Positions 35,998-36,390 of a stretch of 64,000 nt of DNA are shown here, in pieces. The position numbers were made by a program, and so were the translations under genes. Source of the DNA: Epithemia pelagica (Eukaryota > Protista > Bacillariophyta); the NCBI GenBank assembly GCA_946965045.2, contig OX459761.1, positions 62,001 to 126,000 on the forward strand, read 5' to 3'. Each line of letters begins with the position of its first letter. Within the stretch, counting starts at the first letter, position 1. The notes under the pieces were generated by a model, which saw only the letters and a list, made by a program, of their open reading frames with translations, ran no database searches and had not been told where the DNA came from.

Positions 35998-36390
35998 CTA
36001 ACATGGACCAATTTCACCTTTTGCATTTTTGCAAAGATTTCTGAATCTTATACAGCCAACACTAATTGTCTTTGCAACAAAATATACCTTCATAGCTCCA
36101 GGATATTTAATCATAGCAGAGCTGCCCGCTATGACTTCACAAGCTGAAGCTACTATACATGCGCCAGCACAAACTTTGTCGTTTCGAGCAATATCTTCTG
36201 CTGCTTGATATGCAGTAGATCCTATAGCTCTACCACTTTCTATAGCAACAGCCCCTCTGGACATTTGGTCAATTTTATCACCATACTGCACAGCTTGTTC
36301 GGTTGCATTGCCAACCATATATGATATTTCCGTTCCAGCTTTTTCAATAACTTTTTGTGTAGCGCGAGCTATACCTTCTTCTTTTGACAT
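35998..36390 (-). CDS. intron cargo, Cys-rich small protein (130 aa)
   Basis: Intact ATG ORF between the RT stop and domain V; DIARNDKVC…KYPG…TISVGCIRFRNLC. Confidence 0.82.
   Translation of the reverse strand: MSKEEGIARATQKVIEKAGTEISYMVGNATEQAVQYGDKIDQMSRGAVAIESGRAIGSTAYQAAEDIARNDKVCAGACIVASACEVIAGSSAMIKYPGAMKVYFVAKTISVGCIRFRNLCKNAKGEIGPC

Follow-up and report, generated by a model that had tools for sequence, protein, structure and literature searches.

A group II intron in the plastid psbB gene of the diatom Epithemia pelagica carries, in addition to its reverse transcriptase (RT) gene, a 130-amino acid (aa) open reading frame (ORF) that is probably a genuine passenger gene of the intron, its translation predicted and its family an orphan one. 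The DNA in question (the window) is a 64-kb stretch of plastid DNA from a pennate diatom, with which its gene order and RNA genes agree; a search of the organism's own genome places it at C23:62001-126000 in an assembly of 60.5 Mb. The family to which the psbB ORF (the cargo) belongs is seen only in diatom plastid-linked sequence, in at least six settings that include group I and group II introns, an integrase island and small replicons encoding an RNA-dependent RNA polymerase (RdRp).

The psbB intron and its passenger gene

The exons of psbB (Table 1), when joined, encode 509 aa, and contigs from RNA libraries join position 35879 to 38827, skipping the intervening 2947 nt (although these joints may come from intron-less relatives). 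Rfam matches within the intron place its D5 model at 35918-35958 and Intron_gpII at 35876-35957. The intron-encoded RT matches Pfam domains with E-values of 4e-27 (RVT_N), 4e-35 (RVT_1), 4e-21 (GIIM) and 7e-10 (HNH), and is 76-86% identical to the RTs of three other introns among the collected loci (designated by L numbers: L005, L021 and L026). An earlier reading of this DNA, made from the sequence only, had reported an intact 130-aa ORF between the RT stop at 36497 and domain V; ORF calls and the Rfam D5 match confirm it, at a distance of 106 nt downstream of the RT ORF.

A search of 5.8 billion proteins yields 91 clusters of homologues at 43-95% identity, all without names and nearly all metagenomic; 54 of the 91 are exactly 130 aa long and nearly all fall between 129 and 131 aa. 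No names were found for those members of the family that are held by NCBI. Among four psbB-type orthologues (window, L005, L021 and L026), the ratio of nonsynonymous to synonymous substitution (dN/dS) is 0.14-0.26 for the cargo at dS of 0.4-0.9, and 0.14-0.21 for the RTs of the same four introns, apart from one close pair at 0.56. The substitution pattern thus shows the psbB cargo to have diverged together with its RT under purifying selection. Contigs covering the cargo ORF are present in four marine or biofilm metatranscriptomes (which establishes presence in RNA libraries only). A chance ORF or a chance motif is ruled out by the number of homologues, their constant length, dN/dS and the profile match described next.

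The sequence-only reading had also likened the psbB ORF to two small ORFs in the psaA intron of the same window (cargo A and cargo B). The motif on which it relied, D71-x2-C74-x22-P97 G98-x13-G112 C113-x2-F116-x3-C120, is exactly as it was given, and IS-x-GC is common to the psbB ORF and both psaA ORFs. BLASTP matches of the psbB cargo to cargo A (E 6e-5) and cargo B (E 1e-4) are weak but significant. The profile-profile comparison that had been named as the test of this kinship bears it out: hhalign of 75 psbB-type sequences (alignment A2) with 111 psaA-type sequences (A3) gives a probability of 91% and an E-value of 1.1e-6 over 95 columns. A hidden Markov model (HMM) built from psaA-type sequences alone likewise picks out the psbB ORF (E 2.6e-9) when run against ORFs of the collected loci.

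A mixed alignment of 55 sequences shows no variation at six positions: D71, C74, P97, F116, C120 and C130, the terminal residue. Across 80 clusters defined at 50% identity, each represented by one full-length sequence, 75 retain D71, 79 C74, 77 an acidic residue (D or E) at position 85, 66 S110 and 56 C113; of the 68 representatives that align at position 120, 64 have C120, and 62 of the 80 have a Cys among their last six residues. The psbB ORF carries D71, C74 and E85 (the acidic residue at Cys +11), with D-x2-C at the start of its predicted helix 2, as well as P97, G98, S110, C113, F116, C120 and, as its last residue, C130. In a maximum-likelihood tree the family falls into two deeply separated clades, both supported at 100/99, with the psbB cargo in clade B and the psaA cargo in clade A; motif, a length of ~125-135 aa, profile match and three-helix layout all place the psbB ORF in the family.

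Known families provide no match, whether in Pfam, NCBIfam, PHROGs, PADLOC or by PDB sequence profile. Specifically, the 130-aa ORF has no Pfam match to RT or maturase domains at E up to 1, no Pfam or NCBIfam match to an endonuclease domain (LAGLIDADG, HNH or GIY-YIG) and no match to PADLOC defence models at E up to 1.

The cargo ORF is enclosed by a perfect inverted repeat that starts ~18 nt past the RT stop and ends ~20 nt ahead of domain V; these borders place the ORF in a hairpin that loops out of the 3' portion of domain IV, a position that should leave the ribozyme core undisturbed. L021 and L005 share this closing stem, with changes in both arms, and L026 has it with one mismatch; this conservation with two-sided changes, among four distinct sequences only, is suggestive of a maintained stem. 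The 64-kb window contains four homopolymer runs of 12 nt or more, three of which are coding-strand A-runs at cassette borders: one at the psbB cassette and two at the psaA cassette (Table 1). Such runs may have been left by template switching onto RNAs with A-tails.

Settings of the family and its exchange between introns

The family is narrowly distributed, with only 170 clusters among 1.84 billion representatives, and a feature search of the Atlas matched only the family's own clusters, labelled Bacillariophyta. Neither clade was found in 185,579 GTDB prokaryote species genomes, and clade B was not found in IMG/VR.

In psbB-type introns (those of the window, L005 and L021-L030, many of them on contigs of ~3 kb with little beyond the intron), clade B members follow the RT. 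In L001-L004 a clade B member lies within a 23S rRNA group I intron, immediately ahead of a 137-aa LAGLIDADG ORF, and in L055 one lies ~650 nt upstream of an RT. A clade-B-like copy stands free beside rrn5 in the window, but is broken: its reading frame shifts at AGCTCGTT/AGCTCGTG and the C-terminal part resumes in another frame. This copy sits in the inverted repeat, with a further, inverted C-terminal fragment at 4422-4589, and the same 63-aa piece also matches C23:21677-21847 and contigs C14 and C15. Clade A is represented by the two copies in the psaA intron of the window, which start 182 nt into that intron, by a copy upstream of the RT in an atpB intron, by one in an island with a tyrosine integrase adjoining dnaK, by another beside rrn5, and by the first ORF of RdRp contigs of ~3.6 kb.

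The psbB-type RTs are 76-86% identical to one another; the RTs of the psaA, atpB and L055 type are 48-70% identical to one another and 35-38% identical to the psbB type. Within the window, the psbB and psaA RTs share 38% identity over 586 aa (E 2e-125) and the same four domains. The two introns had been described as clearly divergent, which they are, and as unrelated, which is too strong since their RTs are 38% identical. That the cargo sits in different intron slots holds as well: the psaA position fits domain I, as judged by its distance from the 5' end, and the psbB cargo is in domain IV. More generally, psbB-type introns always carry the cargo after the RT and the psaA/atpB type carries it ~600 nt before the RT. 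L055 cuts across this division of clades: its RT is 70% identical to the psaA RT of the window, yet the cargo upstream is of clade B where the window has clade A, implying that cassettes have been swapped between introns. The differing slots, L055 and the group I intron, island and replicon settings taken together point to several insertions or swaps, and make a single ancestral capture unlikely on comparative grounds. At least two independent captures by different introns, as the earlier reading proposed, are thus supported, and the proposal is widened by the further settings.

One precedent for a non-maturase passenger gene in an organellar intron is rps3, which resides inside a group I intron of fungal mitochondrial rnl. 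As in that system, the psbB cargo is neither an RT nor a homing endonuclease, lies in a looped-out part of the intron and is inherited with it. Unlike rps3, it is an orphan with no known host function, and its family is found in group I as well as group II introns, in two slots, and is shared with RNA replicons.

Group II introns of diatom plastids have been described in atpB of Seminavis, in psaA of Toxarium and Haslea and in petB (PMC8393795, PMC8070900, PMC8541233); the Haslea silbo psaA intron of that set is 2921 bp long and contains orf608 alone. Hosts, the RT-encoding type of intron and the genes psaA and atpB are shared with the introns considered here, but these papers report the RT ORF alone and mention neither a psbB intron nor a small ORF family. 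Literature searches, whose journal coverage was incomplete, turned up neither a psbB intron of a diatom nor this family of ORFs. The group I setting also has a described counterpart in the IB4 rnl intron of the Schizostauron plastid, which contains a LAGLIDADG gene and is 657 bp long (PMC8541233). The 23S intron of L001 encodes a 137-aa LAGLIDADG ORF with the same QWIVGFVDG motif, but is ~1.1 kb long because a member of clade B lies directly upstream of the endonuclease gene.

The psaA cassette and RNA replicons

The replicon contigs of ~3.6 kb, which come from IMG/VR and from a double-stranded RNA (dsRNA) sequencing study (PMC7308569), have the family ORF first, followed by a 340-aa ORF2 and the RdRp (Pfam RdRP_1, E 3e-12). 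Only three distinct replicon sequences carry the family among the RdRp contigs fetched. Cargo A of the psaA intron is 79-80% identical to ORF1 of the RdRp contig L019, and the 40-aa ORF that overlaps its stop matches the first 45 residues of L019 ORF2 at 50% identity (BLASTP E 8e-14) and is matched by the ORF2 HMM at E 8e-8. Because the first 40 codons of replicon ORF2 came along with it, cargo A must have been copied from the 5' end of a replicon; these sequence matches show the psaA cassette to be a 5' fragment of replicon RNA, and the direction of transfer to be from RNA to DNA. (The RT ORF of the psaA intron, for its part, stops 1 nt before the 3' splice site.)

A comparable trace is lacking for clade B: no remnants of ORF2 or RdRp were found adjoining the clade-B copies of L053, L055 and L001. 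The source of the psbB cassette could be plastid DNA.

Genes of the RdRp group are also located inside diatom plastid DNA contigs, near rpl genes, dnaB, secA, ccsA and similar. Those in L031, L032/L033 and L049 look like plastid insertions derived from RNA replicons. The contig L032, which has one of these insertions, also contains a colicin-immunity-type ORF (PF09204) at 14444-14842. More distant members of the group, L040, L044 and L047 (32-48% RdRp identity), keep ORF2 and the RdRp, but have another small ORF in first place, also rich in Cys and with hydrophobic stretches, which suggests that the first ORF is an accessory gene that can be exchanged. Contig L048 (3776 nt) reads as L044 (3716 nt) circularly permuted, in the order RdRp C-terminus, ORF1, ORF2, RdRp N-terminus, as could arise from concatemers, from a circular form or from faulty assembly.

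Mitovirus-like sequences are present in plant mitochondrial DNA, and the small RdRp replicons, with RdRp genes inside diatom plastid DNA contigs, are similarly organelle-linked. For the small first ORF and its passage into introns we know of no parallel. The Bryopsis chloroplast dsRNA is an organelle-associated dsRNA replicon, as cited in PMC7308569, its link to an organelle being the feature in common with the RdRp group.

Table 1. Features of the window (plain coordinates) and of collected loci (coordinates preceded by an L number)
Feature	Coordinates	Strand	Remarks
psbB exon 1	38827..39183	(-)	119 codons; ends TGG GAT directly before GTGCG
Group II intron in psbB	35880..38826	(-)	2947 nt; 5' GTGCG at 38826; 3' end CCGAC
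Intron-encoded protein (RT), 603 aa	36497..38308	(-)	RVT_N, RVT_1 (YADD), GIIM, HNH
Closing stem, 5' arm	36464..36479	(-)	perfect 16-nt inverted repeat with 35980-35995, 468 nt apart
A17 tract	36410..36426	(-)	just upstream of psbB cargo start codon
psbB cargo ORF, 130 aa, clade B	35998..36390	(-)	intact; ATG start; between RT stop and domain V
Closing stem, 3' arm	35980..35995	(-)	pairs with 36464-36479; encloses cargo ORF
Intron domains V and VI	35876..35958	(-)	Rfam RF00029, 54.3 bits; RF04357, 54.3 bits
psbB exon 2	34707..35879	(-)	390 codons and stop; frame open to stop
psaA intron	14979..18482	(-)	3504 nt
A18 tract	18306-18323		coding-strand A-run before psaA cargo A
psaA cargo A, 129 aa, clade A	17911..18300	(-)	BLASTP and profile match to psbB cargo
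40-aa ORF	17789..17911	(-)	copy of replicon ORF2 N-terminus; overlaps cargo A stop
psaA cargo B	17401..17847	(-)	divergent clade A paralogue (BLASTP, tree)
A15 tract	17384-17398		coding-strand A-run after psaA cargo B
psaA-intron RT ORF	14980-16806	(-)	runs through domains V/VI (14979-15053)
Fourth homopolymer run	48572-48587		in ordinary spacer
Free-standing copy beside rrn5	4631..5130	(+)	clade-B-like; broken by 8-bp tandem duplication
RdRp in plastid DNA	L031:7603-9986		intact 661-aa RdRp after ORF2 fragment
RdRp in plastid DNA	L032 and L033:6985-9125		ORF2 in pieces and 374-aa RdRp
RdRp in plastid DNA	L049:223-2587		frameshifted RdRp beside integrase-like ORF

Elsewhere in the window, Rfam reports IsrR (the antisense RNA of isiA) at 29475-29661 (+) with 181.8 bits, inside an ORF at 28690-30135 (-) that we take to be psbC; the match may reflect similarity between psbC and isiA sequence and not an antisense RNA gene.

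Predicted protein and competing explanations

AlphaFold models of the two types have the same layout, with helices at 3-68, 72-93 and 99-122 in type B (predicted local distance difference test, pLDDT, 80.9) and at 4-69, 73-92 and 101-123 in type A (pLDDT 72.6). The conserved positions (D71, C74, D/E85, S110, C113, C120 and the C-terminal Cys) are almost all possible metal or disulfide ligands, and the family averages 6.65 Cys per protein. Judging from the helix limits of the models, which suggest an antiparallel hairpin, C74 and C120 would be level with each other and close to D71 and the C-terminal Cys. The cargo protein is basic (isoelectric point ~8.8, with a tail of +4 to +5). These properties are compatible with a helical hairpin stapled by metal or disulfide, with a basic tail, that would act in trans on RNA or on a membrane surface, a model-based proposal that is tentative and somewhat short of an even chance. 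Prediction of a homodimer from two copies scored 0.00 and carries no weight either way.

Fold searches returned matches within noise only: E 0.67 at best for PDB by Foldseek (NINJ1), E 0.26 at best for BFVD, and a template modeling (TM) score of 0.57 or less in a shape search of the ESM Atlas. A wide VIA-align search produced only generic helical bundles, with Z of 9.9 or less. The colicin pore domain had a feature score of 0.76. The copper storage proteins Csp1 and Csp3 are four-helix bundles whose core is lined by ~13-19 Cys. Antiparallel helices with Cys on their inner faces are a feature in common with Csp3 and Ccsp (VIA-align Z 9.4 and 9.1, root-mean-square deviation 2.2-2.4, 78-85 residues), but these Z values are below the chance level for helical bundles (~13), the cargo has only 6-7 Cys and there is no sequence similarity, so that the likeness of the models is a resemblance only.

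The reading that we prefer, and hold to be somewhat more likely than not, is that the psbB ORF is a passenger gene of its intron and that cassettes enter introns when an intron RT switches templates onto other plastid RNAs, possibly A-tailed. The psbB cassette would be a separate and older acquisition, of clade B, and the protein would act, with the less than even chance given above, to the benefit of RNA-based selfish elements. In a bolder version, to which we grant appreciably less than an even chance, selfish elements of the plastid (RdRp replicons, group I and group II introns, integrase islands) trade one gene among themselves, and the intron RT copies pieces of replicon RNA into plastid DNA by template switching onto A-tailed RNAs. 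The psbB cassette would then be a second capture of this kind, from a clade-B replicon yet unsampled, and the protein a metal-stapled factor for all RNA-based elements of the plastid, or one by which the host shuts replicons out.

Several observations weigh against the preferred reading. Template switching is deduced from cassette position and A-runs alone, and the A-runs are short or absent in orthologous psbB-type introns. No clade-B member was found among the RdRp replicons, and there is no trace of replicon ORF2 at the psbB cassette; the tree within clade A is poorly resolved, and no psbB-type intron without cargo was found for comparison. On the side of the protein, presence in RNA libraries is no proof of translation, D71, C74, C120 and C130 are placed close together by the geometry of an antiparallel hairpin and not by measured distances, and no search produced a significant fold or family match.

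The same exchange of genes might instead have been selected by the host, with domesticated replicon genes interfering with RdRp replicons (for example as a dominant-negative ORF1), by analogy with immunity conferred by endogenous viral elements. Clade A is indeed common to replicon ORF1 and plastid DNA, cargo A of psaA came from a replicon, DNA copies have been under purifying selection over dS of up to ~0.9 and clade B is seen only in DNA settings. But the free-standing copy in this plastid is broken, which makes a strong host need less likely, and the three distinct replicon sequences that carry the family are few among the RdRp contigs fetched; host-side exclusion is accordingly given a low probability.

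It had been suggested that the protein is toxin-like or membrane-active and functions in addiction; a hydrophobic helical hairpin in the thylakoid or envelope membrane would then penalize loss of the element. The Kyte-Doolittle mean over 19 residues of helix 2 (1.67-1.71) is at the usual threshold for a membrane span, that of helix 3 in clade A is 1.51, the best Foldseek match, though not significant, is NINJ1, and related replicons hold other small hydrophobic Cys-rich ORFs in the slot of ORF1. This hydrophobicity is borderline, however, and helix 2 has a near-invariant acidic residue at its middle; in clade B, helix 3 is amphipathic and bears six basic residues; the psbB intron contains no antidote or partner gene; there is no match to PADLOC or to a toxin or membrane family; and strict conservation of Cys, Asp and Glu suits a ligand site better than a membrane toxin. 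Type I toxin-antitoxin peptides such as Hok and TisB have fewer than ~60 aa and a single transmembrane helix, and are countered by an antisense RNA; the cargo protein is 130 aa long with three helices (antisense RNA was not looked for). With no family match, borderline hydrophobicity and no partner gene, the suggestion is not supported as it was worded, and a membrane-active toxin or addiction module is improbable.

That the protein is an accessory factor of its own intron, aiding splicing or retrohoming together with the RT, has in its favor a basic C-terminal tail and linkage to, and inheritance with, the RT in every psbB-type intron seen; close relatives without a nearby RT (beside the LAGLIDADG gene, free-standing, and in RdRp replicons) and the lack of a detected RNA-binding domain make it very unlikely. 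A common ancestor of psbB- and psaA-type introns that already had the gene, with divergence and rearrangement following, is a reading already disfavored and of slight probability, for although the RTs are homologues that share their four domains and the cargo has diverged (~25% identity) to the same order as the RTs (38%), the slots differ (after the RT, as against ~180 nt into the intron), L055 pairs a psaA-type RT with clade B cargo, a group I intron, an island and RNA replicons also house the family, and psaA cargo A carries a fragment of replicon ORF2.

Group II introns are usually seen as minimal elements, consisting of a ribozyme and one RT. Here an unrelated gene rides in group II introns, in two slots, and is kept by selection. 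Its family moves between selfish genetic elements (introns, islands and RNA virus-like molecules) and joins DNA introns with RNA replicons inside one organelle. Cargo A of the psaA intron provides a concrete case for asking how intron RTs import foreign RNA into organelle genomes. Since hundreds of clusters of this unnamed family recur in marine and biofilm data, assigning a function to it would annotate a recurrent gene of diatom plastids; if the protein helps or blocks RNA replicons, it would open the study of persistent RNA elements of the plastid.
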